Source: Pocillopora damicornis
Taxonomy: Eukaryota
Reading direction: 5' to 3'
Assembly: GCF_003704095.1 (NCBI RefSeq)
Contig: NW_020846801.1
Span: 186,001-250,000, forward strand
DNA length: 64,000 bases
Shown piece after piece: positions 14,369-63,898 of the stretch (positions are counted from its first letter, which is position 1; every line of letters starts with the position of its first letter). Below the pieces are notes generated by a model. The model was not told where the DNA came from and did no database searches. It saw nothing but the letters and a program-made list of their open reading frames with translations. Both the position numbers and the translations under genes were made by a program.

Positions 14369-14471
14369 GACCTCTCGCAGGCAAGCATTGCTCAAAGGCG
14401 AAGAAACACCCTTACTGAAACACTAACAATGAGAGCATGCTGGCAGGCTTGTGATGTCAGGTCAAAAGGAC

Positions 14472-19989: not shown

Positions 19990-20184
19990 TTTCAATAATG
20001 AAAATATCAAATATGTGCCTCATAGCCAAAAGAACTGTGCAAAATCCACACAGCTGTGCAAAATCCTCACAGCTGTTACATGATCTCGTCGTGAGGAATC
20101 CGAAACCTTGAAGTGGAAGGGAAGGAGGAGGGTGGACTGGGGTGGAGTTGCCCCTTGCCTACCGACTGGGTGACAAGGTGAGGG

Positions 20185-30243: not shown

Positions 30244-30355
30244 CACCGTCCGAGAAAGCGAAAGAAAAATGATAATACTCCTTCCCTATGTACAATTGAA
30301 ATGATATGACGTTTATAACGTGGGAGTGGCGGAGGTGCGGTGATCGTATGATTGA

Positions 30356-36085: not shown

Positions 36086-36130
<45 letters not shown>

Positions 36131-39367: not shown

Positions 39368-42300
39368 TGTATTACGAATCACAGAGGGCTTACTCACATC
39401 GACATGTAACGAGTTTCAGGAAAATTGCCAAAGAAAGAGACAACTCTGAAAACTGAAGATTTGGATGTCACGTCAGACAGTCTTATATTAGTGACAAGTG
39501 TAACCTAAAACTGAACGTGCCAGAGAGTTGAATCAAGAAACTATACTTATGTCAGCATAGCAAACATTACATGTCATCGTAAAATTAACAAAGAAAATTA
39601 AAATGTGGTACACTGTTGATTTTGCCTCTGCAGTTGAATCTATCAGTCACGCAATGCAAATTAAAATCAGACTTTCCTATGATGTCACGCGACATGGTAT
39701 AGTGTCAGGGTTATCAAGAGCAAGCATGGTTAAACGCAACTCACAACTTCCTTAAAGTGCTAGCCTGTTCAGACGTTCAATCAGTGAAACGAAGCGCGAG
39801 AGTAGCGGAGGAGTGACAAAAAAAAAAAAACAACAACAAAAAACCGCGAGGATTGGGTCGAGTCGTGCAATGAATAACTTTTCATGGAATGACTTGAATT
39901 GTATAATTTATGCGTGTAGAGCATAAAACACGCTGTTCAACACGTTTTCATGGCTTTTATAAAGGCACAGCCATTTTAATTTTTCACCTTTGTTTAATAA
40001 TGCGTTATCCTGAATATGGCATGAAGAAATAAACTGCCAGCCGTTTCCATAAGTCATAATAATTTTAACATGGTACCGAAACGGGCTATAAGACAATGGT
40101 TCGTAATGCGTGTAAGAGTTTTGTATTGACTGCTGTTCAAAGGTTCAAAGGCTATTCTTTCACGCATTACTGGAAAAACGAAGATTATTGAAAGGAAAGA
40201 CACATTGGAAACGTTTAATCTAAGAACTAATTTGCAGAAAAGTTTCTGAGTTAGATCTTACACTGTTTTATTTTATACATCATTCACTGCAATAAAAGTT
40301 TTGAAAATTATTTCTTATCTGGTAGAAGATAACATTCCTTTGGAATTTCCTTTATCTTTGTTCCTTTTTGGAAGAGATTTTTCAGCGAGTGAATACAATG
40401 CCCCGGATAAGTTCTGTCTACCTTCGCCGGAAACTAAAGCGCTGTTTCGGACCTTAAGAAATGAATTAAATCAATTTAAATATATGTTAATGAGGTCATT
40501 TGGTGGTTTGAAGGTGTCAGGGTCAGAATCAAAGGTTTTAAAAGGTGATTTTCATAAAAAAAACTTCGTGATAATAAGCCCAATTTATTGACGCTTCATA
40601 TTCAAATATCGTAAGTGGTTTCACATTCAAGAGGAACTGATAAAAATTAACTTGGGGCTTTCCGTGTTATTTCGTTCAAGGCTGGTACTAAAATAAACCA
40701 CCAAAAACAAAATGATAGTTTTTATAAACAACACAACGATGTCTGAAGAAGAAGAGGCCTGTTTGATACCAAATTAGCAAAATACTGTCCAGCCGCTTCT
40801 CATTTTTGTCTTTCACCTCTTTGTGCACAGATGAAGACAATAAAGGCGTAACCATCACCAAGTTGATAATACGAAATCGTTTCTCAACATACCAGTTATT
40901 TTATAAAAACTATTTTATAACAGTGAAATCCAAGGCATGAGCAGTGCTTACAGACTGGTGACGTGACCATAACATGATCGACATGAATTTTTCAGTTGTC
41001 GTTTTGTAAATCTTGTATTACACTTAACATCAAGGATCTCTCTACGAAAGAGCACAGCCCCCCAAACTGGCACATTAATGAAAGACAAGGGTAAGAAGCT
41101 TTTTGCTCATTTAAGTAAAGAATTTAAAATGATTTAGCTTGGCTGATTACAGAGTTCGAATATGAAGGTAGAATAGTCCTCCTCGACTGTAATTTTAACG
41201 AGTTATATTCATCAAAGCTATTGTGCTATTGAGGTTCAACATCCTCAAGATCCTCGCTTCTTTTGTTTCGTCTCCACGCATAAATTTTAATAAGATCAGC
41301 GATCAAGAAAGAAGCAAAAGTCAATCGGCTGAATATTCTACAAATCCCTATTAAACTGTGGGTTTTCTTTTCTTAACAAGGAAACAGGAAAATTATCATA
41401 AATATGGCAATAAAAACACTGCTTTGACTTTTTGACAACGGATGACCTTGAACCCTTTGACAAGTTTACGTTATCAGGCCAAAGACAAAAAATAAAGAAA
41501 AAAAAGGAAAATAGAAACATCCTCTGTTGAACAGTTCATTGTTAGTCTTATAGAGCTTGTTTTATACTCGTGTGTAGAGTTTTCCCATTATAAAGCGTAT
41601 TTGATAGGATAAGAAATGAGATGACCCTAACGATGTCTAACTGCCATTGTAGTCTGTTTTCATTCTACCCATGGGCGGTTATTCAGGTCGACCAGCCGTG
41701 TTTAGACTTTAAAAAGCCGGACTCCTATTCTGAGCTACTCCGAAGCCTCAGATACCCAAAGGATATGACGAGGATAATTGAATACATTTTCTCCGATCTG
41801 TTTCAGTTGGTGTTTGACACAGAATTGATCCGTAAGCTCTCTACTGTTATTGACTCTGAAAAATTAAGGATTTTTAAGTCTATTCAACCTGGATCAGTTT
41901 TGAAATGATTATTTTGCATGAAATTCAATGCATGAAAGGTTCTATCTTAGACACAATTTCTTTTTTAACTGTATCTTGGGATTTAACCCTGTGACCTATA
42001 AAGTCAATGATAGAACTGAGAAATGTTGTCTGAACTCTTGCGTCTGTGGAGGAAATCCTACAGTACTTAAATGTGGTACCTTTTATCATTTTCTTTTTTT
42101 ACAAAGTGAATTTTTGGATTTTTCTGGTAGCTGATAGTGAAAGGATGAAGTTAATTTTCACTGGTGACATAATTCTGTGAGGATTCGAGATAATTACCTG
42201 TTTTAACCTTGACGTTTATAAGATTGTATCGTTTTTCTCCTAACTGAGAACCTGTGTGTTAATGTCAAAAAAGATATCTACATTAACACAAACAAACAAA

Positions 42301-43173: not shown

Positions 43174-46100
43174 ATGATTATTTTATTACTGCTACGAAGC
43201 ACGCTGTTGCTTCTCGTAGCAAACTATTCTTTTGCCCAAGAATGGTACAGCCAAGACAATTATGGACCCATGTATTACGAGCCAAACACAGTGGAGGAAT
43301 TAAAACCTTCATTTGTGGAAAAGCGGCAGGCAGAGAGCTTAGCCACTGAATCAAAGTCTTTTTATTTGTCGGAGCACTCCGCGTCTAACGTCCGTGAAAA
43401 ACGAGACATAGGTGACGTGGACGCTAAAAAAAACAGTAGTGACGTCACGGAGTATACCACAAATGAAGGTGTTAATCACGTGGCTGACATGCCCGAGGAA
43501 AATGACCAATCATTTAACCCAGATAGCTCTCTAGAAGCGACCTCGCACAGTCCGACCAATGACAGCTATGAATATATGCAAAGTCCGACCAACAGCAGCT
43601 CTGAGTACGTGGAAAGTACTAACAACAGCAGCAATGAGTACATGGAAAGTCCTAACAACAGCAGCACTGAGTATGTGGAAAGTCCTAACATCAATGGCTA
43701 CGAAAACGCACAAGACGTTGCCAGTGATAGCTACGAATTCACACAAAGTGTTGCAAATAATAGCGTTGAATATGCTGCCGAAGATAGCCACGACAAAGCT
43801 CAAACCGTTGCCAATGATAGCTACGAATTCACTCAACGCATTGCAAATAATAGCGTCCAGTTCGCACCAAATGTTGGCAAAGACAGCTACGAAAACGCAC
43901 AAAACGTTTCCAACAGTAGCTACAGTATAACTGATTCCAACCAAGTGAATGAAATGCCGAATGAAACAATGAAAACCGGACCTGAAGGGACTGAAATGTC
44001 TCCATTAACACCCGACGTCATGCACAAAGGCTCGGCCGAGGGCAGCGCGAACGACGGTCGTATGGACGTGACAGAGGAACCAAAGGATGATGGCGCAGGA
44101 GACCTAGAAACCAAACCTGTCGATACAGCCCCTAGCCATGAGACCTCTGGAACACCTGACTTCATGGAGGAGGTCGACGAAAGCTCTGGCTCTGGAAATT
44201 CAAATGATCGAGAAAATGATGATGAGGAGAACAAAGCGAAAAATGGAAATAAAGACGATAGGAATAGGAATAGGAATAAAAGTGATGATAGTGCTAACGC
44301 CAGGAAAGAAACTAACGGAAGGAAAATGACGCCCACATCGGCAAGCCGGGGTGAAGATAGCAGTGGAAATTTCAATAACAGAGAAGTCGATGATTTGTTT
44401 ACAGACTACGACGAGGATGAGTATGAGGATGAACAACCGGTGAAGAGGCAAAATTTGGGTACGAAAATTATTAGATGAGTAAACTGTATCATTTTATACT
44501 TAACTTCCATTGAATTAGAGGATATATGAAAAGCAAACATCTGAACCACGGAAAAAGAGAGAGGTCTTTGAGGTTAGAAATCACAATTGACAAGCTAAAA
44601 TAGAGCCTAAACTTAGCTCAGTTAGTTTCAGTCAGTCAGTTAGTTTCTGTGCTACACCAGTATCGCAGAATAGTCCTTGGTTCGGATCCCATTCGAGCCT
44701 GACTTTTCCCAGGCTTAATTTTTACCACCATCAGCTTTGCGATGATCTGCATTTAATTGGTCAGAAGAACACTATGTGAATAAGAAGTGGCTAACTCTAA
44801 AGCTTCCTTCGTTTCAATTTGTAGCCTGGGGTGCTCCAAGACAGCAATATGCGTATTCCTCAATGCCATGTTGTCCATCAAACATGGTTTGTCCAGGTTA
44901 GTTATAAAATAAACCAGTTTACATTGCATTAATTTTTCATATTCCCCACCTCAACTCACTCTATTCACATTTCGCAATAGAAACATACTTTGCCTCGTAC
45001 ACATATCATCATCCAGTTATCGTATGCCACGAGAAGATGAGTTAAGAATCTCGTCACATATTCTAATCAAATACTATATTTCCGTCTTCCTTTTTCAGAT
45101 AAACCACCGTGTGTCCCTGACACTGGTGGTTATAAGGGTTTCCAAGGTTACATTAACTATCCAGGGTACCCACCTAATTACCAGTCCCAAGCTGTACCGA
45201 GCTTTCAGCCTCAAGTGGCTCCAACTTCGCCGCATTACGCGAATCCCGGACCTGCTGCCAAGAATAGCAAGGCAAACCCAGTCAAGGCACGTCCTACATC
45301 AGAAAAAGCTTCCACTAGAAAAGTCTCTTCTTGGGACCAACTGGGATCTGACAGGAATGCTTCACCACAAACGAAGGGTTTTATTTCAGACGCAGATGAC
45401 TACCATGAATTCAACGGGACGGAACAGAGCTTTGCCGGGTACGATTTTAAACAGAACGAAGACAAATTCTACAACAGCACTGGAAAACATGATGACGAAA
45501 ATAAAGAGTTTTTAGAAAAAAATGACTCGAATCCGCTGACAACGCAGTTGATATTAGAGAACGAAAATGACCATGTTCGAGAGAATAATTCTATTACACC
45601 AACTAAAGAGAACGATAAGGAAAATGTGAAACAACAGAAGTCCTCCGAAGAGCCAAATTACAAGGATGAAATCGAGAAAGAAGCCGTGGAACAAGAGAAA
45701 GAAGCTGATCGGATGGCTGAAAATGAAGAACATAAAGACGACGAGGACGACGACGACGACGATGATGATGATGATGACGACGACAACGAAGACGAAGACG
45801 ATGAAGATGATGATGAACGAAATAACAACGATGATGACCATCAGGGACAACACGCACCTGATAACAAAGGACAAAAGGATGACATATACAATCCTACAAA
45901 TCAATCATTTGCAGTCTCTCCAACAGTGCTTCCAGGAATGTGTCCACCTTGTCGTAAGTAATACCAAAGTGTTAATGTCATGGAATGTATAATCACGACA
46001 TCTCTACTGCTGTCATATCATAGATAAACAAGATAGGATTAGTGGGAAAATCATTTAGTAGTCGGATCACACTGTAATATTAAATCAAATTAAATTAAAC

Positions 46101-49100
46101 TGTCTACACGTGAGATTATATTAAAATGACTAATTCTTTTTTTTTTGTTTCCATTTTGCAGCAAAGCCAACAAAAGCGCAAGGTAAAGAAATCCAAAATA
46201 TTAACACAACATCTGTCATGTATTTATATTTACGAAATATTCCTTCAAGAAATCGCTAAGTGCTATTTTAGTCATAAACATTTGTGACATATAACTCATA
46301 GTCAGCAATAGTGTTTTCTTAAGGAAGACTTAGCAGTTAAAACACCAGGTCAATCTGTGCATATCGTTCAATTTTGTACTGATCCACTGCGTGATCGATG
46401 TTTTCGCTCAATACAAATTCACTCTTACCTTGGCCTTACAATGGAGAAGGGTTCTATTTAGATCATTGAAATCACTCCCAGCTTTGGGTTGACACTTTAC
46501 TTCTCATAATTAAATAAAGACAATTCAGTTTACACACACTTATGTTACGACATCGCTTAATCTAACCAGCGTTATGTTGCATTAACATCCTCTCAGCTTG
46601 TAGCGCCAAAATAGATCTGGCTTTCCTAATCGATGGTTCTTCAAGCGTTGAAAGATACGGTGTCGGAAACTTCCGAAAACTAATCGAATTTGTCCGAGGA
46701 CTGACGATGGGATTCGCCATTTCCAAAAGAAATACCCGAGTGTCCTTAACTGTGTATGGAACAAGACCGAAGATGATATTTAATTTCCGAAGGTTGGTTG
46801 TCTCATGAAAAAGTACTGTTATCATCTGTAGGAAATAGTTTAAAACTAGTGTAGGAAATACTTTAAAGCTAGTGTGAAATATATCCTTAAATCAATGATG
46901 TATTCGCTGTTGTAACTGTGATCAAGCTGCTCTTCAGTATAAGATGGGAAATCTGAACTCACTGGTCGCGATATCCAAATTAAATGACTTTTTTTGAAAT
47001 ATTCGTTGATGTTCAGTTCAATCACTCCACGGAAAACTGAAACGTTTAGAATGATTGTTTCGAACGAAAGTGGTATGACAGATTCCCCTTACAATGGAAA
47101 TAGTGATCATCTTTGACCTCCTTGTTAAAGTTAACATATCTGGTTTCCCATCTTTGAATTTCGAAGGGTGGATAATACTTATCCATCAGACAGCAGTGGA
47201 AGTTATCTGATGCCTGCTCTGGCTCTCGTATTTCCAAAAAATTTTTTCTATGAAAAAATTAAAGTAAATTGACAGATGTAGAATTTGATCATTGACTTTC
47301 GGTAATTTCAGATATCAGAGTAACTCATTGTTATTCACGGCTCTCAACCGGCCAATCTACTATCCACGGACGGGAGCGAGAACAGGTCGGGCTCTCAGCT
47401 TTGCCAACAGAAGGCTTTTCACGAGAAGCCGACGTGTTCGAGCTCGTAAAGTACTGGTGGTTATTACTGATGGTGGCTCAATCGATGACGTACATGGAAT
47501 CTCTAAGAGACTACGAGCCAACGGTATCACAATCTATTCAGTAGGAGTGGGAAGGTACTTCAACGCAAAGGAATTGGACTCGATGGCAACTGATCCTGAC
47601 AAGACGCACGTTTTCACGTCGGATTTTAAGCAGATACAGTACATCACAAACGATCTTAAGAAAGCGATCTGTTTGAGTAAGTATTCAACGAGCTTAAGCA
47701 CCAAACGAACTCACCGTGCGAGAAAAAATTGATTGGAGTCAAAGTCTCAACTCAGTCGATATTTTTTACATATTTGCTCACAGACGTACATCATCTAGCG
47801 GAGTGCAACATTGAGGTCATCTGTAGATCTATGAATGAAATGTTCAATCTGGATAACAATTATATTCATTGAATCACACTGCACAATACCTGTCGACTTT
47901 GTGCTTCCTTAGTAAAAAATATCTAGAAATAATTTTAAAACTAACCAATGTTCTATAAGGGTCCTATACCGTTAGATGTGTTGACCTATTATAAGCTTCC
48001 AAAAATTTGAGCTCCCGATTACCTCTCCTACTTTTCTCCAAAACACGTTCATCACACAAAGTCTTACGTGGACAGAAAAAAGCAAAAAACACGGATTTAC
48101 TCATCGACAGCATGTACTTGCCCACGGCGGAGAAAGAGAAGAGGATGTTGTCCTTCAACCTCTTTCTGATTCTGTAATTTGAACATTATGTAACGTATCT
48201 AATCTGTCATATACCCTGTTTAATGGTTAACCTTTTGCTGTTTAGGTGCGGGTGGTACTCTGTCAGTTTCAAAGCTTCAGCCATGTGTTTGCGGACCAAC
48301 TAAACCAGTAGGTCCTACAAAACCGGGTTAGTATGAAGATGTTAAGCTAAATGGTACCCTTCAAAATGTCAAATAGTAGTCTACAATTCTTCTAATATTT
48401 ACACTTGTTAGTCCCTTGATATGCGATAGTGGATTCGTTTCAAAACCTACAGCTTTAAACCTGTAGAGGTTACTCATATCATGTGATCGATCTCTTGGAT
48501 AGAATATATGACGCACAAACCTCAACTGTCCTTCTTTCTGGCGAAAGATAGTAGAGCGGAAAGCGTTCATTGGAAAGGATACTCTTGAGTAATAAATCCT
48601 ATGCATCTGAAGATTGACTGATGGACTTCTAACAATTCGCATGTTGTTATTGCAGTACCTAAGACAACACCGAAAAGAGGCGGCCCAGGTAAACCTGGAA
48701 AACCAGGTGGTCCAGGTGGTCCTGGTGGTCCCGGGGGTCCTGGTGGGCCTGGAGGACCGGGTGGACCAGGCGGCCCAGGAGGTCCTGGAGGGCCCAAACC
48801 TGGTACAACCACAAAGCCAACGAAAAATCCTCCAGGTGAGGAATTCACAACCCATCTTTCTATTACACAGTTTGATCATAGCACCGCCTGATGCTATCTC
48901 ATTCACGCTTTTAAAGGTAAACCAGGTGGACCTGGAGGACCTGGAGGACCCGGCGGACCCGGAGGACCTAGTGGCCCAGGTGGCCCTGGAGGTCCCGGAG
49001 GACCAGGTGGTCCTGGAGGTCCAGGTGGGCCCGGTGGACCTGGAGGACCAAAGACAACCCCAAGACCAGGGAAAACAACAAAGCCTCCAGGTAAGCCTGG

Positions 49101-52100
49101 AGGCCCTGGGGGACCTGGAGGTCCAGGAGGGCCTGGCGGCCCAGGAGGCCCAGGTGGTCCCGGTGGACCAGGCGGACCAACAACCAAGAAACCAGGTACG
49201 ACTTGAGCTTACTATGGAAGCTTTGAAAAAAATAATTCAAGGATTAGGACAAATAGTGTCAGTGAATAATACATTTTCTATTGACATGCACCTAAGCTGC
49301 CAATTGATGTTAGTGCCAAATTATGATATATTATGATCGTTATAGTTTTGAGCGAGATGCTAATTTACCAACTGATGGTAAAGGAGACCGGCAACTTCGT
49401 TGTATCATAACAATTATTACAACTATTGTTTTATACCAAATTTTTCTTGACGATATCAATGTGAGTCGTTTAGATACGAAAATAAAATGGATATCGTAGT
49501 TACAAAAGAAGGAAGCACCATTGTAGCCGTTGCACAACATTTCTTCCATAAATATCGAATGTGTTCATGCGGTGAAGACGCCTATGTAAAATTACTTCCT
49601 AGGAAAGTCTACAAGACCAACAAAACCAACAAAGAGACCTGGTAAACCTGGAGGACCCGGAGGACCTGGAGGCCCTGGAGGGCCTGGAGGTCCTGGAGGT
49701 CCAGGAGGTCCTGGAGGCCCTGGAGGTCCCGGAGGGCCTGGTGGAAAGACAACGCCCGTCCCAGGAAAATCTACCAAACCTACTAAGCCAACAAAGAAGC
49801 CAGGGAAACCTGGAGGGCCTGGTGGACCTGGAGGTCCTGGAGGCCCAGGTGGACCAGGTGGGCCCGGAGGACCCGGAGGGCCAGGAGGACCCAAAACAAG
49901 CCGTCCGGGAACACCAACAAAGCCAACTAAACCAACAAAGAAACCAGGTACACCAGGAGGTCCGGGTGGCCCGAAAGGTCCTGGTGGTCCTGGAGGCCCT
50001 GGGGGACCTGGTGGCCCTGGAGGGCCTGGGGGTCCAGGAGGTCCTGGAGGACCTGGAGGGCCAGGTGGTCCAGGAGGACCAGGTGGACCTGGTGGTCCTA
50101 CAACAGCATCTCCAAGAGCACCAACCAAGAAGACGACACCAACTCCTTATGCCCCAGGGAAACCCAATGGCCCTGGAGGACCAGGGGGACCTGGGGGACC
50201 CGGAGGACCCGGTGGCCCAGGAGGACCTGGAGGACCTGGTGGACCAGGAGGGCCGGGAGGTAATGTGTCAATGATATCGTCTTAATTGACTTATGAATAA
50301 TATCTTAATCAATAAAATCATACTGTAACAGAGGTTTTGATCTTGATATTAATTGTTAAACGTTAATTTGCTACTTAAAGAGGGCGATAGTGTCCTGGGT
50401 TCACGCCCTCCACCTTGGTTATTAAACACTCGGTTGTCCGTATTTAATTACTTTTAACTCTCTGTACGTTCACAATGTTTGTTCCTAATTATTTTTTTTC
50501 TTATGTGTCACTTAAAATGTAACGTGCATTTGAATATATCTTCATGTTGATTTGCCCCATAGAAATATTGATTATTGCTATACGCCTGCGGTTTCCCTTG
50601 CTCGAAAGAAGATTGTGATTGGTTGATTGGTAATCACGTGAGCCTGGATTAATCAAAATGTATCCCGCTCAAATTAAATTTTGACAGAATGTCAAAATTG
50701 TATCCTGATTCGAATACGTTTATTAAATGCGATCATTTTTTCAGGTTTTTTCACGTAATCAGAGCGTCGCTTAGGCCGGTGGTGTGATTGTAGCGAGATA
50801 TTTTTTAAACTTTGTTATCTTAACTCCTCGGGGATTCCAGAAAATTTTGATTTGTCGCTAGCTCTCCGCCAATTCTTAAAATTACGATGGACTAACCTGT
50901 GACGAAAAAGCAGCGCTCGTCTGCTTTATCGAAAGACGAAATCGAATACTGGTTTAGCAGAAGGACTACGAAAATACGGTTTTTTTAAAGGTACATTTGC
51001 GGTGTTTACAAAAAGTTGTACTATTATAAACGCTCCTTTTTTGCTAATCCACAATGTTCATCCTAAAAAAATTTTAAATGTATAACAGAGCACTTAGTGT
51101 CTGCTCCCTCGGGAAACAGTAAGTTTCTTCTCCAGAGAGTTGGAAGACTTCGTCTCAGGAAACATTGAGACTCTCGGGAAGACAAAACAAACTGATCTTA
51201 TCAGCAGCAGACATCAATTGCATTTTATCAATCGTTATCAAAAGCTCCTCGTGTTTACTGTCTCATGGTTTGTTTACATAGGTCCGGGTGGCCCAGGTGG
51301 TCCCGGGGGACCTGGCGGTCCGTACGGTCCCACAACAAAGAAACCAGGAAAACCAGGAGGACCTGGTGGTCCTGGAGGTCCAGGAGGACCTGGAGGACCT
51401 ACTACAAAGCCTCCTGGAAAACCAGGAGGCCCTGGAACCCCAGGCGGTCCAGGAGGCCCAGGAGGTCCGGGTGGGCCCGGTGGTCCTGGAGGTCCAAGTG
51501 GACCTGGAGGTCCAAATGGTCCCAAGACTACAACTCCAAGGCCAGGTGTGCCGACGAAAAAGCCAACCACAAGGAAACCGGGCACTCCAGGCGGACCAGG
51601 AGGCCCTAAGGGGCCTGGTGGACCCGGTGGCCCAGGAGGACCAGGTTTGTGATACGGAACGAGTCTTCTTATATGTTAAACGAACAAAATATAAGGAAAT
51701 CAAAGTTAAATGATAGTATTAAAAAGATCCTAGACGAGTGTTTGAACTCAATTTCAGCAGTCATGTCATACCAAGTTTGATGAATATAGGGTGACGCTTA
51801 CCTAAAGGGTTTTTTTGCCTTTTAAGAATCCTTACTTAAACTTGCTGTTTTGCTGGCAAATTGTGGTACAGGAAAGTAACAAAATTGTTAATTATGTGAT
51901 TCAATTAATTGACATCTGCGTTCCGTTTGATTGGCCGTGGTGCAGCTGCCACAATTTCCAAATATAGATAATGTAACGTTAAACCAGCTGGAAACCAGCC
52001 AAATAGTAAACCTTTATAACAGTACCGCTTAAGAAACCTGAAGCTCACATCATGTTACGGACGTTAAGAATGTAAGGGTCGTAATGAATTAAATAATTAA

Positions 52101-55100
52101 TGAATAATATTTATGAGAATATGTCAAGTAAAAAGATATTGCTCTATTTTCAACAGGCGGACCTGGAGGCCCGGGGGGTCCTGGAGGCCCAGGTGGTCCA
52201 ACAACTGCACGACCAGGTGTGCCTACCAAACCCACCAAACCAACAAAACGCCCAGGACGCCCAGGTGGACCAGGGGGTCCAGGAGGACCCGGAGGACCAG
52301 GAGGTCCTGGCGGACCTGGAGGACCTGGAGGACCCGGTGGACCTGGGGGTCCAGGAGGACCAACAACCGCCAGACCTGGGGTGCCAACAAAACCAACCAA
52401 ACCAACACAACGCCCGGGTAAACCAGGTGGACCAGGAGGGCCGAGTGGACCCGGAGGACCTGGAGGGCCTGGGGGTCCTGGTGGACCAGGTGGACCTGGG
52501 GGACCTGGAGGTCCGGGAGGACCAACAACTACTAGACCTGGTGTACCAACTAAACCAACCAAACCAACAAAACGCCCAGGTACGCCAGGTGGACCAGGGG
52601 GGCCAAAAGGGCCAGGAGGACCTGGAGGTCCAGGAGGTCCTGGAGGACCAGGAGGACCAGGTGGGCCTGGAGGACCTGGAGGACCAGGAGGGCCAGGTAC
52701 AGTGAGAGCTTTGTGCAATCCACAACACTATCTGCAATCCATAACACATTTTTAACTTTTATCAACGAGCCAGCAAATTTTAAAATGTTGCGATATATTA
52801 TATGCTCCTCTCAGAATGAATTCTTCGTCTTTGTCGTTAATGTTCGAATATTATGCGACTGTTAACAACTTTAAATTCATATTTGTTATACTACTTGGCG
52901 AATTGCGTTAATTTTGCAAAGTTCTGACCAACTAAACCCGGAGCACTCGTTATCAAGACAGTATTAGAGTATCAACATTTTTCAAAAGCGAACAATTTAG
53001 TCCTGATACAGTTGTTTAGATATCTCGTAAGTTTCTTCTGAAGTATCGCAACGAACATCACATGTCGAACACAACCTCCTGAACATGATATAATTTCCAA
53101 GAACTTAACCTACCTAACAAACTCAGATCTGAGTCAGAAGGATCCATTTACAACCCTGTGATAGGAAACGTGAATCTTAAACATCAAGTATTTTTTTCGA
53201 TAAATCTAGGTGGACCTGGAGGGCCGCCAGCAGGACAGCCTACAACACCCGTCACAAAACCACCCGGTACTCCAGGAGGTCCAGGAGGTCCAGGAGGACC
53301 TGGTGGGCCTGGTGGACCTGGAGGACCTGGAGGACCAGGTGGACCAACAGGACCAACAAAGCCAACAAAGCCACCTGGCAAGCCTGGAGGACCTGGGGGA
53401 CCAGGAGGGCCTGGAGGTCCAGGAGGTCCTGGAGGACCCACAACGAAACGTCCAGGAAAACCAGGGGGACCCGGGGGTCCAGGAGGCCCTGGAGGACCCG
53501 GTGGCCCTGGTGGGCCAGGAGGACCAACAACTAAACGACCAGGAACACCAGGTAAAAATTAAACCGTAACGGTGAAGCCAGCAGGAGTAATGCAATTGCA
53601 AAGCTGCCACTTTAATATGTTTTCGATAGAACAAGTAGTCATTCATCTATGGGAATTACTGTGTTTTAAATCTTTTGCTAAAGCTAGTAAACATTAATTG
53701 AAAGCTGAGAAAAATCGAGATTGAATTACGATGGCCAATGTTTTGAAAAATGCATCGAAACACTATCAAGATATTAGATTATGAAGAGATGAGCAATGAA
53801 AGCGAAAGTATGTCTCAAATATTATTCATTACTTTCCTAGAAACTGGAGAGGTTTTAATGTGTTTTCCTTTGCTGATATCGGTAGTTCATGTCTCTTCTA
53901 TTCAATTTGGCTTTTAAGATGCGATACATTATACAGCACAAAATATTCACTAGATTATTCTGAACTTTAGGTGGCCCTGGAGGGCCAGGCGGCCCCGGAG
54001 GACCAGGTGGTCCTGGCGGTCCAGGAGGTCCTGGAGGACCTGGAGGTCCCACTACAAAACGTCCAGGTTCCCCAGGAGGACCAGGAGGTCCTGGTGGGCC
54101 TACAACAAAACCGCCACCTGGGAAGCCTGGAGGTCCTGGGGGCCCAGGGGGACCAGGAGGTCCTGGAGGACCTGGAGGACCAGGAGGACCAGGAGGCCCA
54201 GGAGGACCAAAGACAAAGTCACCAAAACCAGGAGTACCTAAAACAACACCCACGACTAAACCACCAGGAAAACCAGGCGGTCCTGGAGGCCCAGGGGGCC
54301 CTGGTGGACCAGGAGGACCAGGAGGTCCTGGAGGCCCTGGGGGTCCTGGAGGTCCCGGGGGACCCGGAGGTCCAAAAACAACAAAACCAGTTCCTACGAA
54401 GAAACCAACGAAACGCCCGGGATCTCCCGGTGGGCCAGGAGGGCCAGGAGGACCAGGAGGGCCCGGTGGACCTGGAGGACCTGGAGGACCAGGGGGCCCT
54501 GGTGGACCAAAGACGAAACCTCCTGGTACTAAAACCAAACCTACCAAGTATGCACCAGGAAACCCTGGAGGTCCTGGTGGTCCTGGAGGACCTGGTGGAC
54601 CCGGCGGGCCAGGAGGACCGGGTGGGCCTGGAGGGCCACCAGCGAAGACCACGCCAAAAACACCCAAGACAAAAGCTCCAGGTCAGATCACAGAATATTG
54701 AGAAAAAAAAATAAAGGGCTGCTAATAATCATAAAAGTGTTACTGACTATTATCATAATCATAATGGTAAAATTAATGATAATGACAGTGGAATAGGTAA
54801 TTTGATAAATGGTAAATACACATCTGAGGGTTCCAACAGCGGCGGCACGTTGCACATTACTTTCAGAGTTAGCTTACTCAAAACGACTCGTTTATACTAA
54901 GAGAAGCAAAGATGCATACCTCGAAATCGCATACCGCGAAGAAGACAAAAGAAAAACTTATTATGGCAAAACTTAGAGAAATTATCACTTTGTGATTTTT
55001 CTTTAACAATACACCTTTGACAACGACAATGACGGGAAGTGAACTATAAATACTATCATACTTCGTTCCCCTTTTTCAGGCAAACCTGGGGGACCTGGTG

Positions 55101-58100
55101 GACCTGGAGGTCCGGGAGGACCTGGGGGACCAACAACAAAGCGACCAGGATCTCCGGGCGGACCTGGGGGACCTGGAGGTCCCGGTGGTCCTGGTGGACC
55201 TGGTGGTCCTGGTGGTCCAGGAGGCCCAGGTGGTCCAACAAAGAAACCTGGAAAGCCTGCAAAAACCACAACCAAACCCCCAGGAACACCTGGTGGTCCT
55301 GGCGGTCCGGGGGGCCCTGGGGGACCAGGGGGTCCAGGAGGACCAGGAGGCCCTGGGGGTCCAGGAGGTCCAGGAGGTCCAAATGGTCCTACAACTGCTC
55401 CTCCAGGAAAACCCGGAGGACCTGGAGGCCCCGGGGGACCAGGAGGACCAGGAGGTCCAGGCGGTCCTGGAGGCCCGAAAACGGCTCCACCTGGTCAACC
55501 AGGAGGCCCTGGAGGACCGGGTGGTCCTGGAGGCCCAGGAGGCCCTGGAGGACCGGGTGGACCTGGAGGTCCAGGATGTGTCATGCGCCCAGGAGCGAAA
55601 ACAACGCCAAAAAGCGGCCCAACAAAGCCTGGAGGTGCAAAGCCAACAACCGGAAAGCCTTGTATCACTATTCCACCAGGTAACGTGATAATCCAGCATT
55701 TCAAGGGAACGTTCCACGATCTTTAACCTTTTCTATCTTTGCTTTGCATCAACTTTTATTGTCATTTAACAGCTGTGTCCTTATATCTCAAAAAACTAAA
55801 ATGCTTGCATTTGTTCTGTTCCTACGTCTTGTTTGTGTCAAAACGATAACCTCGTGAAAGAACTAGTTTATCAAATTGTAACGCAGAATATAAAAACGAC
55901 TTTCTACGTGAAATAACTGCTTTCATTTTTATATTTGAGGCTTTACTGTCGTGAAGAAACCAACAACTATTCCTACGCGGCCAGTCGGACCATCTGGCCC
56001 CACAACAGGACCTGCTGCCACAACAGCGCCTAACAAAGGTATTATTGTTTTCCTTTTTCTCTTCAGTTGTGATTTAACTTTTAAGTTCAGCTTCATTTAC
56101 AAAAATTAATTTCGTCGCATTCCCTTGCTTTCGTAGCCTTCTCCTCTTACAGTAGTATAGTTACCAAAGATCCTGCTTTGTTTATGTCTCTAATCATACC
56201 AACATATTGTTCGCACATGGTTTTTGTGGAAAAAAGCCAGGACAAGTAAAACCAAGCAGACTAAACGTTAATATCATTTAACGACAAATTTTGCTGAGAC
56301 GTAATTATGAAATTATTTAAACAATGCTATGAATTAAAAAAACCATCGATTGTTCTACAGTGTGCAAAGTAAAGATGGACATTGGCTTCGTAATCGACGC
56401 AGCCGGCGGCCTTAAGAAAGTATTCCACTACATAAAGAAATTCGTCTTGGAATTGGTGGATTCCTTTACTGTCTCCAGTCAGAATGTCCGGATTGGTTTA
56501 ATTACGAACTCTTATCGCCCTGCAGTCAAGATAAGCTTTGGTCAGTTTAACAAGCCGACCCAAATAAAACGCATCACCCGCCTGCTACAGCCCGACGGTG
56601 GAGCACGCCTATCAGGAAAAGCGCTAACCCTTGCATTAAAGCGGCTCTTTCCCGCTAGCAAGGGCAAGAAAACGTTGGTTTACCTAACTGCGGGTAAATC
56701 GTCCGACCGAGTGCTTGGCCCAGTACAACAGCTTGTTGCTATGGGAGTAAATATCTTCAGTATCGGCGTTGGAACTAATGCTGATCTCAGTGAGATTCTC
56801 ACGGTAGCTAAAGATCCTCAGCACTCGTACAAGACCAACTTTAGAGGCCTGGGAACTATAGTGAAACGCATTAAAGACAAAGCGTGTGCAGGTTGGTATG
56901 CCTTTCCTGATTTGAGAGGCAATTTTGAAGGAGAAATTAAGGAGTGTCAGCAGACAGTCTATCAAAAATGGGAAAACCTGTAGCCTAATGACGTGACGTA
57001 ACATTTGTCATTGGTAAATTAGTGGAAGAAGTAAGTACAATGCAAACTAAAAGTGAGTCTCCTAATATTAGCAACAAAGAGTGTTACCAAACGACTGTCG
57101 TTTCATAAATACATGTTGGATTCTAATCATCACCATAAAAACGCACATTACTTTTAGTAAGATGAATAGAGTCAGATTTTTATATGACTCTCTTGTTTTC
57201 CCCCGCAGAGGCAGGAGGCAGTGAACAGGGACCGAAAAAACCCACTAAGAAACCAAGTAAGTACATGAGCAATTAACATGATTCCAGGGTTCACGTTTAA
57301 CCCCATTTCGAATTTATTAAATTTCTCTATCAACAGAACCACCGAAGGCTGTCGCTATTTTCCCACTGAACCAAAAGACTCGAGGAAAAGACATTGGTCC
57401 CCTGAGGAACAGCCCAGGACTAATATATGGTGTTCGACCCGCTCGTGGACCTAATGGTCAGCCTGGTGGAGCCATCAAATTCCCGAAATTTAAGACCGGC
57501 TATGTGGAGTTTCCGAACAGTGGGAAACTGGACACCAAGAATTCCATAACAGTGACTGCTTGGGTCAAACCGGATGCGCCAGGGAAAATAATTGAGTTCA
57601 GACCGAGAGGGGTGACTTTCGGCATTCGATCGCCTGATATTTTGTACGCTCGTTTTGTCCGCCGTAACGGTCGACCAACCAAAACTGTAAAAACAAAACG
57701 GCGGGGAGTTACCTTGCGACAGTGGAGTTACTTAGCCATTACCTATGACCAGCGAACGGGAATGGGAACTATTTGGCGGAACTCTCGACCCATTGCTTTT
57801 CAGAAGCTCGGCTGGATCAGGCTTGCTACAAAGAAACCTCTTAGGCTTGGAGGGTTGACCCGTGGTCGGCGACCATTCAGTGGCAGTATCACGTGTCTTC
57901 AAGTTTACAGCGATGCTTTGACTGGGCCCCAGATAAAGAATGTACAGAATGTTTGCTTTAAACCAGGTACTAATCACCAACCTCGACGTAAGATATACAC
58001 TTAAACCAATTGAATATTGAACAACAATCAACCTGACATTTTGTCCTGATGCTGCTCATTCCAAGCTGCAATTAAACCATTATTTTCAGCTCACCCACCC

Positions 58101-61100
58101 TCATAGTCTTGGATTTGAGAAAGGCCATATTACGCTAAATTCAAAAATATTTTATCTCTGTCAGTCTTAACAGTGAAGACTTAGGACACACGCTTTAATT
58201 CAAATTCTTAAGTTCTTCATCAAAGTAGAATGGGAATGTAGATATGTGGGCTAAGTTATAGAATATAAAGTAACCAGACACATTTTTTTGGTACAATAGC
58301 TTTTAAAGATACGGTGTGCTGCCATACTCCAGAATATTTTAGGAGTACGAGACACGCGTAGTGTACTTTTAAAAATATACCGGCGGAGTATTCGAGCATA
58401 GTCAAGACGAATACTCTAGGTGTGCGCGGGGTATTGTGCGCGACTTGAATACCCTAGGATTCTAAAGCACCACGATCACGTATTCCATACTCGAATACCA
58501 GAGATTACTTTGATTTTTGCGCAGTGTTAGCCACAGAAATGCATTTGGTTGTTTTATACCATACATATCGCGGGTTAATGTTTTTTATTCTGTTTCCAGG
58601 GCAGCCGACTCCCACCAGACCACCAACAGCCCCTGTTCCAGGTAGGAGAGCAATCGACGGATACCACCCAGGAGTTCTTATTTGAACTGATCTATTTTGA
58701 AGTCTAGATTTTATAAAATTTAATCCAAACATAATGTCTTCATCTGGCAAGAGAAGGTTTTTATCTTGGTATAAACACGGTATGACCAATTTAGAAGCGT
58801 TCCAACCTCCTGCACTCCGTCCGCATTTCAGACTGTTAAGCATTTTATCTTCTTGTTTTAAAGTTTTTGTACTCTGAAAATGATCCTGTTGTTGTTGCAT
58901 GTTACCAGCTCTACCTCCTGCGATGGCATTCTTCCCCTTGAAGTCTAAATATGGTGCCCGTGATATAAGCCCAACGAAAAACCGCCCGGGAAAAATCGTG
59001 GGTGCCTTACCAGCCCGAGGTCCTGACGGCCAGCGTGGTAGTGCTTATAAGTTCCGAGGCCGTCCCGATAGCTTCATCGAGTTTCCGAACAACGGACGAT
59101 TGGATGCAAAGGATTCTATAACCATTCTTGCATATGTAAACCCGGAGAGCGCTGGACCGATCTTCAATTTTAATCCCAAAGGATTTGGAGTGCATTTCTG
59201 GATGGTTCGAAAGAATGTTCTCTTCGCACGCTTTGTGAAAAGGTCCAAGAAGTTTACACGGCCTGTGGCTACGAACAGAGTGAAACCGGGCACTTGGAAC
59301 TGGCTTGCAGCTTCATACGATAAGAACACTGGGTACGCACGTTTGTTCGTGGATTCCAAAATCTCAGCTGAAAGAAATCTCGGCAGAATAAAGCTTGCCA
59401 CCAATTATCCCGTTAGAATGGGTGCACGAAAGGGAGATCGTCGCTTCTTCCGGGGGAAAATAACTTGTGTTCAAGTTTACAATGAAGCCCTGACAAGCCG
59501 GCAAATCCGAGCTGCTAGAAAGAGCTGCTTCAGACCAGGTTTGTCGCAGACCTATTTAATCTGATTTTAAATTTTATTCAAGGAAAATAGAGTTACTTTC
59601 ACTCTCTCTACAATGTTTTTCAGAAAATCGTACCTCTAATGAGTCTGAATGAGTCGCCAGTCAACATTTTAAGAGCAATAGAGTGTCTCTCTTTTCCGGT
59701 GCAGTCGATTTTACTGCAAGTGTTATTACTCCTAGCGCCTCATTATGGTCTTGAAGAGAGTTCCTTCGTAAAGAAAATGCTTAAAATGTTTGAATTAAAA
59801 CAAAATTATTTGAAACAATGTTAGTGTAAATGTTCATTTTAGACAAGTTCTTATCGAGTGTATTTTCTGTTTCAGGTAAAGTCAAGCCCACAAAGCCAAT
59901 TTCACCTGTTACCAAACCTACACCGGGTAAGTCTCGTTTCCTTTTTTTTTTCTACATCATAAAACTTAACAGTTGTAAGAGTCTTAAAAAACCGTTTCTT
60001 TAAGAAAATGTGTAAGATATTTTTTTCCTCTGTTCAAACAGCTATCCGTAACTTGGTGGCCGTGTACCCACTGGACGCTACTTCTGGTGCACGTGACCTC
60101 AGCCCTACCAAGAATCTTCCAGGAAAGCTTTCGAGTGTAAATATCGCTCCAGGCCCTGACGGCAAACCGGACACTGCATTGCGATTCTCTGGCAGTCCTA
60201 ACAGTTACATAGAGTTCCCAAATAATGGAAGACTGGACACCAGACGTTCAATCACTTGCATAGCATGGGTGTACAATGAAGGAAGGGGAGGGCCGGTGTT
60301 CCAATACGATCCACGGGGAGTGGGGGTTGGGTTAAGAATCATCGGCTTGGATCGAATTGAAGCGCTCATTGTCAGCCGAAACAGACGAAAGAAAATTCCT
60401 GTCGTGACTCGAAAGAGGTTCTTTAAGCCCAGGACTTGGACTTACGTAGGATTCTCGTACGATTTCCTTTCTGGTATTGTCACATTGTACGTTAATGCCA
60501 GGCCAGTCTTACGTAGGATCATTGGTCGAGTTCAGCTTCTTACTAACAAACCAGCCCGCGCGGGCTCAACCAGGCGTGGAAAACGATTCTTCCGCGGTCG
60601 CTTGTCGTGTATACAGGTGTACAGCAGAGCTCTGACCAGGCGCGAGATCATTGCAGTGAGAAAAAGGTGCTTCAAAGGAGGTATGATAGGTGAAACAGAA
60701 ATTAATTGAAAATGTAAGCCAGATTACCAGCGGGTTAACTTGTATGATAAATCCATGGCCAGTCTGTAGTCTCGTGTTTTTCAAATTGTTTCCTTAAGAA
60801 AATTTAATGAGTGTAATAACATTAATCGTATGCCTTTATTTTACCTTTTTATTGTGTATAGCATCGAAATGATGTTCAGAGAAATTCAACTCAGAAATCA
60901 GATCCAGTAACTTAGCAAAATTACGGTAGGAATAAGAAAGAGGCAAAGGAAAAACTGAGTGCAACAAACTTACTTGCACGGATTGATCTTACAATACTGT
61001 TTAAGTCATTTTGTATCATTTGTTTCTCATTTGCAGCCGGAATAATTCCAGGAAAACCTTCTACAGGTAAGAAGTGAATGTCATTGTTGCATAAATCACT

Positions 61101-63898
61101 CTTCGTTGTTCAGCGATATTTAGATGCGTTAATGTACCTATGATGATTTCAGATACCCCGACGCCTGTGGCTACATTCCCACTCAGTGGTGTACTCAGTG
61201 GACGGGATATCTCTCCAAATAAGAACCCACGAGCAAAACTCCGTAATGTGCGGCCAGACAACGGACCCGATGGTCTCCCTTCAGGTGCCATTAAGTTGAG
61301 AGGTAGTCGAGATAGCTATGTGGTGTTTCCAAACTACGGAAAACTGGACACAACGGACGAAATAACGATCACTGTGTGGGTGAAGCCCAAAAGCGCTGGA
61401 CCAATCTTCCATTATAAGCCCCAATCCTGGGGTGGAGTACATGTCTGGGTTGTAGGACGACCTGGTAATCGAAAGTTTTTCGTCCGATTCTCCACGCGTA
61501 ACGGCAAAACTGTTCCAGCACTAAGAAGTAGGAAAATCAAAATGGGACGATGGTATTATGTGGCTGTTACTTACGATAAAAAGAAGGGAGTTGGAACCAT
61601 TTGGAGAAATGGCTTCATTGATGCTCAGGTATTACAGACATAACAATAGACTGTTTTTACCAATTTAACACATTTGGACCCATTGTCAGCAATTAAGGAA
61701 AGCGATATGTTCACAGTGGTGATTACAACAGTATCCAGAAAAAAGTCTCGCACACAGAGTTCAATTTCCAACTAAACCTAATTTCTTTGCTTTTTTTTGC
61801 TGATAGTCGCAGTCTTACGTTTTAGTTTGTTTGTGTTGTTATCTTCGGCTGACTTTTAACCTTCTTTCCAGTACCCTTTCTCATGGAGAGTAACAGACGC
61901 AATAGGTTAATGAACAAAGCAGAGTATCAGTCATTAACAATATCATTTGTTCGCCATTTAGCGCCGTGTTGGAATTTACAAACTCGCCACTAACTACCCA
62001 GCTATTATGGGGCGAAAACCAGGGGATCGCCGCGTACTGAGAGGAAGCATTTCGTGTTTGCAAATCTTCAAGAAAGCTTTGATTGGACCACAGATTCGAG
62101 CACAGAAAAGGAAATGTTTCAGACGAAGTAAGAGCTGCTTGCTTACTCTTTTTATATAAGACTAATTTAAGTCAAACAGAGACAGACAGATGAACAGGAA
62201 GGGAAAGGAAAACAGACTAACTGACAAACGTACCTACAAACTTACAGACAAATGTGCTTAAAGAAAGATAAAAAGACAGACAGAAAGATCAGTGTATTAG
62301 TTTTCTTACATTTTACAACGTAAATTATCTGATACTGAACTTTTGTTTTCTCTGTATTTTCTCTTCCAAGAACCAAATCCTAAAAGGCCCAAGCCGAAGC
62401 CAGGTGGGTTGTTGCAATATATGTTTGTAAGTCTTAGGAGTGATATCAAAGAACTGCAAAGAGTCGACCACAAACATTTTGCGCCTAGTAAAGAAGGCTA
62501 AGGTTAAAGAGTTGATGATGACTCATTGATGAGTTGATTCACTTACACGGTGGGATCCGAGATAAGTACGAGATCATTTATTAGCTTGAGGCCTGGCAAC
62601 GATGACATAAACGAACCAAATGAACAGTTCCTAATTTCTGTTGCTCATACATGTGGTTTCTTTCCTTTATTATTTTGTCATTTGTTTTCAGTACGGCTTC
62701 ATCCTCTTAGTTTGTACAAAAGCGCTTCATGGGATATTTTTTTGTCTTTATTCTGCAGCTCAGCCGATGCTCATGGGGCTCTATCCGTTTGATCCAATCA
62801 GTAGAGGCCGAGACAGAAGCCCCAATAAAGCACCTAAAGCTTTGTTCAGCAACGTCGCTTTGACCAGTGGTCCCGATGGCCGCCCAAAATCTGCCGTTAA
62901 ACTGCGTGGCCTCCCAAACAGCTACATTGAAATACCCAATAATGGAAAATTGCGCACGACCAATTCCATCTCCATGTTTGCCTGGGTCAAACCTACAGGG
63001 ACAGCAGGACCAATTATCAACTACGGCAGAGGACCCGCCTGGGAGACACACCTGTGGCAGACAGACCCCAAAACGCTCTTTGTTCGATATGTGAAGATAG
63101 GAGGTGCCCCCACTCCGGCCGTTACTAAGGCAGCGCTGACGCGAGGCGTTTGGAATTTCGTCGGTACAACTTACGATGGAACTTATGCCACACTTTGGGT
63201 GAATGGTAAAAAGGTCGCTTCGCGTAAAATCAACAGCATTCGTTTGTCAACAATTGGACCAATAAGGATCGGAGTGAAGAACGGCGATAAGCGTTACTTC
63301 AAAGGCGCCGTAGCTTGTGTGCAGCTCTATCGAGTTGCTTTACAGAAAAAACAGATACGGAGAGCCATGAAAAGATGTATGAGACGTGAGTATCTCAAAA
63401 ATGGAATTGGTTTATGTGTTCTAGGTATTTCAGATTTAGCGCTGAGAAATATTTCAGTAAGAGAGGAAACATATTAAACTTCACCTTTTGGTGAATAAGT
63501 CGACTTGCATTTAACTTAAACGGATATAACCATATGAGAGCAGTTTTCCCATAATTCTTCTGGCAAAGAAATCGGATAAAATCTTGCTTTAGTCAATTAA
63601 ATTATTGTTAGCATAAGCAGATATATTATGACATTCCTGGAGAAACATTTAAAGATCAGAGAAGCCATCACTTTCTTCCTATTCAAAAGGGCGCGGCCCA
63701 AACTGTAATTGAACTTGGTAATCGCGCGAATTTCATATAGTTCTTGCTGATAAAATAAATAGAGAGATAAATGTTTCACACTTGAGGCTCTATACTTTTA
63801 CGTTTAGCAAAGTTGACCATTGATAACTATTTATTTAGGACGCCCGTCTGTTCCCCGTACCACTCCACCCCCACCGCCACCAACTCAGGCACCAGCAT
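43174..63898 (+). CDS. Giant secreted modular protein (acidic pro-region, VWA, (GGP)n/PTK rod, VWA, tandem LamG/ConA-like domains); 3' end beyond window
   Basis: Phase-consistent GT-AG exons: 43174-44458, 44825-44896, 45099-45953, 46162-46182, 46597-46792, 47312-47676, 48246-48326, 48656-48835, 48917-49195, 49603-50259, 51282-51644, 52157-52696, 53210-53551, 53971-54681, 55080-55679, 55940-56038, 56361-56891, 57209-57256, 57337-57966, 58600-58641, 58909-59538, 59876-59926, 60042-60680, 61037-61066, 61153-61628, 61962-62127, 62371-62403, 62759-63385, 63839-63898. That is about 10.6 kb of coding sequence with no stop reached. Signal peptide [21 protein letters not shown]. Confidence 0.82.
43549..43935 (+). 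repeat. Coding 33-bp (11-aa) tandem repeat, about 12 units
   Basis: [77 protein letters not shown] ... Confidence 0.8.
44610..44760 (+). mobile_element. tRNA-derived SINE-like repeat in intron
   Basis: A-box-like TAGCTCAGTTAG, then CACCAGTATCGCAGA, and B-box-like GGTTCGGATCCC. No intact cloverleaf. Confidence 0.45.
45737..45840 (+). repeat. Coding (GAY)n poly-Asp/Glu tract
   Basis: [33 protein letters not shown]. Confidence 0.9.
46597..47676 (+). other. VWA domain 1 of the giant protein (two exons)
   Basis: [17 protein letters not shown]...TRVSLTVY...RTGRAL...[11 protein letters not shown]...IYSVGVG...ELDSMATDP...IC. Confidence 0.9.
48656..55679 (+). repeat. Coding (Gly-Gly-Pro)n blocks with Pro/Thr/Lys linkers, eight exons, about 1,224 aa
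   Basis: GGN-GGN-CCN codon arrays confined to phase-1 exons bounded by plus-strand AG/GT sites. Confidence 0.92.
56361..56891 (+). other. VWA domain 2 of the giant protein (degenerate MIDAS)
   Basis: [16 protein letters not shown]...VRIGLI...SGKAL...[11 protein letters not shown]...IFSIGVG...AC. Confidence 0.85.
57337..63385 (+). other. Five tandem about 210-aa LamG/ConA-like (pentraxin-like) domains
   Basis: Units at 57337-57966, 58909-59538, 60042-60680, 61153-62127 and 62759-63385. Each has FPL...RDxSP...GPDG...SY(I/V)EFPNNGxLD...SITxxAWV...WxYxxxxYD...LxxNG...FxGxxxCxQxYxxAL...C. Confidence 0.8.

Follow-up and report, generated by a model that had tools for sequence, protein, structure and literature searches.

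In Hydra, the collagen Hcol6 contains triple helices interrupted by vWFA domains, and in Nematostella the collagen NvNCol-7, with about 1,000 residues, is divided into 25 blocks (PMC12549020). Flagelliform silk combines GGX and GPGGX motifs with a conserved spacer, polyglycine-II nanocrystals have been reported for it, and its proline is hydroxylated in the Gly-Pro-Gly context (PMC6168590). Cnidoin, an elastomer of the Hydra nematocyst, has a repeat rich in Gly, Gln, Met and Cys (QMQGCGQQXP) and is flanked by minicollagen cysteine-rich domains (PMC4321713). Here, a stretch of 64,000 nucleotides from the coral Pocillopora damicornis (contig NW_020846801.1, positions 186,001 to 250,000 of the forward strand; the whole stretch is called the window below) was analyzed, in which eight + strand exons at 48656-55679 encode blocks of Gly-Gly-Pro (GGP) triplets separated by linkers. 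The best explanation is that this repeat region forms the middle part of a single, very large and secreted protein of the coral extracellular matrix. The conserved, exon-encoded GGP runs suggest an undescribed collagen-like or polyglycine-II-like structural rod.

Poly(Gly-Pro-Gly), a polymer identical to poly(Pro-Gly-Gly), is one of the classic synthetic models of collagen, and we know of no natural protein that is built from it. In the solid state, synthetic poly(Pro-Gly-Gly) has been described as helices of the polyproline II (PPII) or polyglycine-II type that are hydrogen-bonded side by side, and not as collagen. The searchable literature, including the coral skeletal proteome papers, contained no description of a natural (GGP)n block protein, in corals or otherwise. 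The GGP blocks have the same chemical repeat as the synthetic polymer. Unlike this polymer and the snow flea antifreeze protein, they are short, of fixed length and joined by cationic linkers, and no compact bundle was predicted for them.

The VWA-bearing and block-type cnidarian collagens, such as Hcol6 and NvNCol-7, are closest to the GGP protein in architecture. Shared with these, and with collagen VI and the FACIT-type collagens, are glycine at every third position in blocks, richness in proline, non-collagenous interruptions between the blocks, flanking VWA domains, the presence of LamG-like domains, phase-1 introns that split glycine codons, and cysteines at the ends. NvNCol-7 is further alike in having about 1,000 residues in about 25 blocks. 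The GGP protein differs from these collagens in that its second variable position is nearly always Gly, it has no charged pairs at X and Y, and its linkers are long, cationic and mucin-like. No NC1, coiled-coil or minicollagen cysteine-rich domain was found in it. The preliminary description of this region had held that the repeat is neither collagen nor flagelliform silk. The first half of this statement is too strong. Pfam Collagen has no match in the sense frame, but the Gly-Pro-Yaa register, a conserved Cys-x-Cys motif and the VWA flanks keep a triple helix as a serious candidate.

Flagelliform silk is the closest system in motif logic. Both proteins are very long and iterated, with Gly/Pro-rich blocks that alternate with a charged spacer. 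The GGP protein is not a spidroin, as its repeat is a strict triplet instead of the GPGGX pentapeptide and it sits between VWA and LamG (Laminin_G_3) domains instead of spidroin termini. Nevertheless, the GGX motifs, spacer and polyglycine-II nanocrystals of the silk (PMC6168590) make it a closer analogue than had been stated. The GGP protein is not a demonstrated member of either the collagens or the spidroins. Cnidoin is likewise a Gly-rich structural protein of a cnidarian, disordered and elastic, but the two share no sequence.

Mucin-like KEPAPTT repeats of the lubricin type are O-glycosylated, extended hinges. The linkers between the GGP blocks, described before as cationic, possibly O-glycosylated hinges, are cationic and rich in Thr and Pro and resemble such mucin-like regions: linkers of at least 8 residues contain 29% Pro, 23% Thr, 19% Lys, 13% Gly and 4.5% Arg, and Pro often occurs at every third residue. 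Unlike the lubricin-type repeats, they are without acidic residues and are only 8-25 residues long each.

Exons, coding strand and repeat units

The limits given for the repeat in the preliminary description, 48656 and 55679, proved to coincide exactly with the start of exon A and the end of exon H. The eight GGP exons are located at 48656-48835 (A), 48917-49195 (B), 49603-50259 (C), 51282-51644 (D), 52157-52696 (E), 53210-53551 (F), 53971-54681 (G) and 55080-55679 (H). As read from the sequence and checked with a script, each of them is bounded by AG..GT sites, begins and ends in phase 1 and has a length that is a multiple of 3, and each junction splits a codon, usually one for Gly, after its first base. 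Since all of the lengths are divisible by 3, the GGP frame is continuous from the frame of the upstream VWA domain (VWA1) to that of the downstream one (VWA2). Exon B carries blocks of 5-x-8 and 9 triplets, and the first two of these lengths are kept in orthologues. Exon C, the best conserved, has blocks of 10, 9, 2-K-13 and N-9, exon E consists of 3.3 copies of a 162-bp block-plus-linker unit, and exon H ends with a Cys-containing tail of Thr, Lys and Pro.

The RNA evidence consisted of contigs from four RNA studies aligned to 47250-53249; the public RNA runs matching the stretch were labelled coral or marine metagenome. These contigs connect the second VWA1 exon (end at 47676) to an 81-nucleotide exon at 48246-48326 and then to exons A, B, C, D, E and F, with the E-to-F joint present in two runs. 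Every joint between VWA1 and exon F is GT..AG in the + orientation. The intron between exons A and B (48836-48916) is only 81 nucleotides long and was confirmed by RNA joints in three runs. The splice sites of exons G and H were taken from the sequence. The GGP exons are part of an expressed, spliced mRNA, and the + strand is the coding strand.

The opposite strand could lead to a different interpretation, namely that the true product is a minus-strand (GPP)n collagen or that the repeat is a neutral simple-sequence expansion without a constrained product. Minus-strand open reading frames (ORFs) in 48567-55275 read (GPP)n and match Pfam Collagen with 70-87 bits, compared to a cut-off of 27.2, and equivalent antisense ORFs were called by ORF callers on the orthologous contigs. 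The reverse complement of Gly-Pro-Pro codons reads Gly-Gly-Pro, and thus the minus-strand collagen reading is an artefact of complementarity. It was ruled out by the + oriented GT..AG RNA joints, which run into the + strand VWA exons. Also, the GGP frame alone connects both VWA frames, and the wobble positions are randomized with the protein kept, both within the gene and between species. This interpretation has already been refuted by the RNA splice joints, and we give it next to no credence. Since the antisense strand passes Pfam Collagen, ORF-based annotation pipelines will mislabel the locus.

A (GGP)x4 pattern was searched for in the whole assembly, which covered 234,350,878 bases in 4,393 contigs. 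The search gave 161 matches, 146 of them on the forward strand, and every forward one among the matches listed sits in this locus. The 13 matches outside the locus, again among the matches listed, were all on the reverse strand. This distribution shows that the repeat did not arise by chance. They were rejected as paralogues because they are short runs of 3-5 triplets in ordinary Gly/Pro-rich, collagen-like frames, and we regard them as normal collagens read in antisense. Some RNA contigs of very high depth (as much as about 13,000) were also seen to meet the GGP exons for only about 23 nucleotides, at 49136, 49680-49720, 51466-51495 and 52655-52671, and then to continue into unlike sequence. 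These contigs were taken for abundant ordinary collagen mRNAs that match in antisense and not for transcripts of this gene.

Exons A-H encode 1,216-1,224 residues; the range comes from excluding or counting the codons that are split at exon boundaries. Composition totals are sums over single exons, and single exons were used in all searches and folds. Gly makes up 45.3% of the residues, Pro 31.7%, Thr 9.0%, Lys 8.0% and Arg 1.7%. The absence of acidic residues that had been noted is complete, with no Asp, Glu or His in 1,216 residues; the 98 Lys and 21 Arg bring the net charge to +119. Strict GGP triplets number 243; they form 35 runs of 2-13 triplets, which become about 27 blocks when counted by hand through single-residue variants (SGP, KGP, NGP) and exon junctions. 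The earlier estimate of about 30 blocks of mostly 4-13 triplets was, therefore, fair. The longest blocks reach about 16-17 triplets with variants allowed, and the Gly register is broken at every linker. The linker type that had been quoted is present, for example in three near-identical 21-residue copies in exon E. The distance from one proline to the next is three residues in 80% of cases over the whole region and in 51% of cases inside the linkers.

Tandem Repeats Finder detected a 9-bp period at only 67-86% match, as well as higher-order units of 144, 162 and 87 bp, which show growth by duplication of block-plus-linker units. Wobble identity between neighbouring triplets was 0.40/0.32/0.37, compared to 0.39/0.31/0.35 expected from codon usage; a wobble base is thus statistically independent of the one in the next triplet. 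Between the 54-codon units of exon E, there are 51 synonymous and 10 non-synonymous differences. These results bear out the earlier statement that third codon positions vary freely while GGP is preserved.

Orthologues, block lengths and the glycine register

Orthologues were searched for with the VWA2 exon against 1.84 billion representative proteins. Three exon-sized orthologues were found with 67%, 51% and 48% identity (BLAST), and all three contigs carry GGP exons upstream of VWA2. Laminin_G_3 exons follow downstream of VWA2 in two of the three; the remaining contig ends too soon to show them. The upstream walk in the best orthologue (L017) passed through a poly-Asp exon, VWA1, a Cys-Val-Cys exon, about nine GGP exons over 16 kb, and VWA2. 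A fourth orthologue (L018) was obtained from a Joint Genome Institute (JGI) metagenome with a degenerate DNA pattern. The 150 best matches of the VWA2 search were mostly unrelated multi-VWA proteins, none of which had GGP runs longer than 2. A word-index search with exon E (at least 8,000 candidates) returned only spurious Gly/Pro-rich or antisense-collagen ORFs and missed the orthologous exon fragments too, so that it is no evidence for a lack of relatives.

Exons B and C are orthologous one to one. Compared to the best orthologue, amino-acid identity is 97% for exon B and 92% for exon C, in contrast to 83% for VWA1 and 67% for VWA2, and the differences at fourfold-degenerate sites, 56-62%, are nearly saturated. 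Judged by this divergence, exons B and C were shown to be under stronger constraint than the flanking VWA domains in the one orthologue compared. Across four taxa, exon C has no indel inside any block, with amino-acid identities of 84-92% and pairwise fourfold differences of 0.42-0.64. The orthologues keep the repeat at near-saturated synonymous divergence, and protein-level selection on the GGP repeat, which the preliminary description had proposed, is thus shown by comparison of sequences. That description had made its case depend on the repeat being present and constrained in orthologues, and the orthologues favour constraint. The best orthologue contains an internal segmental duplication of two GGP exons (reverse-complement 10137-10643 / 14294-15061; 11483-11686 / 15429-15851), and the distal half of the array thus evolves by exon duplication, with exons B and C remaining fixed.

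Substitutions inside the blocks were counted only if they were flanked by perfect GGP on both sides, using the window and two orthologues. Gly after Pro was substituted 26 times and Pro 7 times, and Gly before Pro was substituted only twice. Among the variable columns of exon C in the four taxa, the corresponding numbers were 6/43 for Gly after Pro, 5/43 for Pro and 0/43 for Gly before Pro. Since the Gly before Pro is near-invariant and the Gly after Pro is variable, the natural register of the repeat is Gly-Pro-Yaa, where Yaa is usually Gly, with Ser, Lys, Asn, Ala, Arg or Thr in some triplets. The opposite asymmetry would be expected from an elastin-type Pro-Gly turn. A PPII helix with three residues per turn and one obligate glycine edge fits a collagen-type triple helix and polyglycine-II packing alike. 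Within the blocks, Gly is found at every third residue over many triplets, as in collagens.

Structural interpretations of the GGP blocks

The explanation that we prefer, tentatively and with somewhat less than even confidence, is that the GGP blocks are length-constrained PPII rods that associate via a glycine edge, in a collagen-type or polyglycine-II-type manner, with cationic mucin-like hinges between them. Each block would be a Gly-Pro-Yaa run, with Yaa mostly Gly, in a PPII helix of three residues per turn, and the invariant glycine edge of this helix would pack against other chains. The packing would most likely be a collagen-type triple helix of low stability that the flanking cysteines staple together, with polyglycine-II-type sheets as the alternative. 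An arrangement of several chains of the collagen type is a serious candidate, since the conserved Cys-x-Cys motif and the flanking VWA domains speak for it, and the work on synthetic poly(Pro-Gly-Gly) favours polyglycine-II-type sheets. The Cys-Val-Cys motif that lies N-terminal of the GGP region is a possible interchain staple. The Thr/Lys/Pro linkers are plausible mucin-like hinges, which would be cationic and probably O-glycosylated. Blocks and hinges together would form a semi-flexible tether built of segments, which would connect the adhesive VWA and LamG modules and reach about 0.35 micrometres at full extension. Its +119 charge could bind polyanions, including the protein's own acidic N-terminus. 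The period-3 spacing of proline (80%), the kept block lengths, the one invariant glycine in each triplet and a constraint that exceeds that on the flanking VWA domains all count for packed rods.

Several observations weigh against such rods. The blocks are short, with 2-13 strict triplets and about 16-17 at most with variants. Gly at the Y position is destabilising in host-guest collagen peptides, and synthetic poly(Pro-Gly-Gly) was reportedly not triple-helical. Without counter-ions, the strongly cationic linkers would work against self-association. Pfam Collagen (PF01391) had no match on the eight sense exons at E values up to 1, to which the HMMER bias filter may contribute, and Pfam returned nothing else on these exons besides a sub-threshold PGRS match. 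No trimerisation, NC1-type, coiled-coil or minicollagen cysteine-rich domain was present in the exons scanned with Pfam. AlphaFold2 monomer runs gave a mean predicted local distance difference test (pLDDT) score of 52 for exon E alone and of 49 for exon C with a three-sequence alignment, and neither model had secondary structure; these predictions are of single chains only and are low-confidence models. The constraint on block length is not absolute, as seen when the block lengths proposed for comparison were followed among orthologues. Exon C has no in-block indel in four taxa, but an RNA contig of run X2 carries an in-frame 18-nucleotide deletion (two GGP triplets) at 49096 in exon B, the fourth orthologue has 7 triplets instead of 9 in the same exon B block, and exons D-H are rearranged and duplicated between species. 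Finally, the substitution counts include copies from unit duplication, and one orthologous contig (L014) has only 3x coverage.

The main rival is a strong one. The GGP region could be a disordered entropic spring or spacer, in which the blocks never pack, the hydrated and expanded chain acts as an elastic tether between adhesive domains, and the linkers are mucin-like stiffeners. Elastin, resilin, flagelliform silk and titin PEVK are elastic systems to which such a chain can be likened. The high content of Gly (45%) and Pro (32%), the lack of hydrophobic core residues and the net charge of +119 all agree with this. Combined Pro and Gly, at about 77%, lie above a compositional threshold for elastomers, which is a heuristic and no proof of elasticity. 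On the proline/glycine plot of Rauscher et al. 2006, such a composition reportedly lies far inside the elastomeric region, which we counted in favour of the spring. The low-confidence AlphaFold2 monomers without secondary structure, the different arrangement of blocks in exons D-H between species and the existence of a block-length variant in exon B point in the same direction. However, a random coil leaves it unexplained that the Gly before Pro is invariant and the Gly after Pro is variable, and an elastin-type turn predicts the reverse. It also leaves unexplained the absence of in-block indels in exon C of four taxa at near-saturated synonymous sites and the stronger conservation of exons B and C compared to the flanking VWA domains. 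We regard the spring as a substantial possibility, if on balance a doubtful one.

Another possible explanation is a self-folding, monomeric polyglycine-II bundle of the snow flea antifreeze type, in which the blocks would fold back on each other and the linkers would form the turns. The GGX periodicity is compatible with this, and neighbouring blocks are of similar length, at about 8-10 triplets. However, the linkers (8-25 residues, with about 24% Lys plus Arg) are long and PPII-prone and would make poor turns, and a Pro at every third residue takes away a third of the backbone NH donors. The preliminary description had suggested a bundle of this kind, but the low-confidence AlphaFold2 monomers lend it no support, with no bundle predicted with or without the small alignment. 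A PDB sequence search found no related solved structure and returned only marginal low-complexity and collagen-peptide matches. Such a bundle is, therefore, very improbable.

The surrounding gene and its significance

Pfam VWA domains (PF00092) are present on both sides of the GGP exons, and all of the gene's features in the window are on the + strand. VWA1 is encoded by two exons. The first, at 46597..46792, contains the DxSxS metal-site motif (Pfam VWA, 40.8 bits), and its 3' end is matched by the loose end of an RNA contig at 47310. The second, at 47312..47676, matches Pfam VWA with an E value of 6e-20 and 72.5 bits, and RNA contigs of four runs join 47676 to 48246. The Cys-Val-Cys motif immediately ahead of the GGP region is encoded by the 81-nucleotide exon at 48246..48326, whose two RNA joints are GT..AG in four runs, and the motif is identical in the best orthologue. 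Downstream of exon H, a 99-nucleotide Thr/Pro-rich exon I (55940..56038) has a homologous segment in the orthologues, where this segment forms part of the last GGP exon. VWA2 is a single exon without the DxSxS motif at 56361..56891 (Pfam VWA, E value 3e-25, 89.8 bits). It is followed by five Laminin_G_3 exons at 57321..63474, a ConA-like lectin domain (PF13385) that was matched on five open frames with 48-77 bits. By Pfam, four additional Laminin_G_3 exons and two or more further VWA domains lie in the next 10 kb past the window (250001-260000), and this region is apparently a continuation of the same gene; the orthologues have the same Laminin_G_3 array. Two Cys follow the GGP region within the window.

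Upstream of VWA1, the 5' exon junctions that we infer are based on sequence sites, phases and frame. The putative first coding exon (43174..44458) begins with Met and a hydrophobic, signal-peptide-like leader, which is followed by Lys-Arg sites and an acidic region rich in Ser, Asn, Glu and Asp; it has a net charge of -54 and a phase-1 GT donor. A putative 72-nucleotide Cys-Cys exon at 44825..44896 (AG..GT sites, phase 1-1) would lead to an acidic exon with a long poly-Asp run at 45099..45953, which has a net charge of -41, a Cys-Pro-Pro-Cys end and a GTAAGT donor in phase 1. A candidate 21-nucleotide mini-exon of the Lys-Pro-Thr-Lys type at 46163..46183 again has AG..GT sites in phase 1-1. 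This chain is supported by an RNA contig of run X10, which extends about 1.7 kb further 5' of 47310, and by the orthologue, in which a homologous poly-Asp exon immediately precedes VWA1. Since a chain of phase-1 splice sites leads from 43174-45953 to VWA1, the acidic region is probably the N-terminus of the same protein, and with it the protein is probably a strongly charge-segregated polyampholyte.

The inferred order of the gene is signal peptide, poly-Asp acidic region, VWA, Cys-x-Cys exon, GGP blocks, VWA, at least nine Laminin_G_3 domains and further VWA. The whole protein is likely well over 4,000 residues long. With its VWA domains, its multidomain build and the signal-peptide-like leader at 43174, it has the features of a secreted VWA-domain extracellular-matrix protein. 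The poly-Asp N-terminus recalls the acid-rich skeletal proteins of corals. The Lys-Arg sites that follow the leader are reminiscent of cnidocyst propeptides (PMC4321713). In the literature searched, no link of the gene to coral skeleton proteomes or cell atlases was found.

Other genes in the window were judged by eye from their translations only. On the minus strand, these are a 2-hydroxyacid dehydrogenase (6396-8611), a DEP-domain protein (18224-20019), an acid-sphingomyelinase-like gene with a saposin-like exon (22365-30285) and an SLC22-like transporter gene (34557-39415). A gene with C-type lectin and EGF domains lies at 31855-33041 on the + strand.

The locus points to an unstudied giant matrix protein of reef-building corals that has a poly-Asp region, a cationic rod and many adhesion domains. 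A natural GGP region of about 1,200 residues makes an old question testable, namely whether Gly-Pro-Gly triplets can assemble into a triple helix or into polyglycine-II sheets, or give no more than a coil. A further-reaching idea, which we consider unlikely at present, is that natural (Gly-Pro-Gly)n rods of fixed length, as polyglycine-II-type arrays or a glycine-rich triple helix, are the cationic scaffold half of the protein and its poly-Asp N-terminus the half that binds mineral or polyanions, and that they represent a new class of animal structural motif. If this were true, one coral gene would supply acid-rich, collagen-like and adhesive functions together in a single product, either in the matrix in which aragonite is deposited or in the wall of the cnidocyst.

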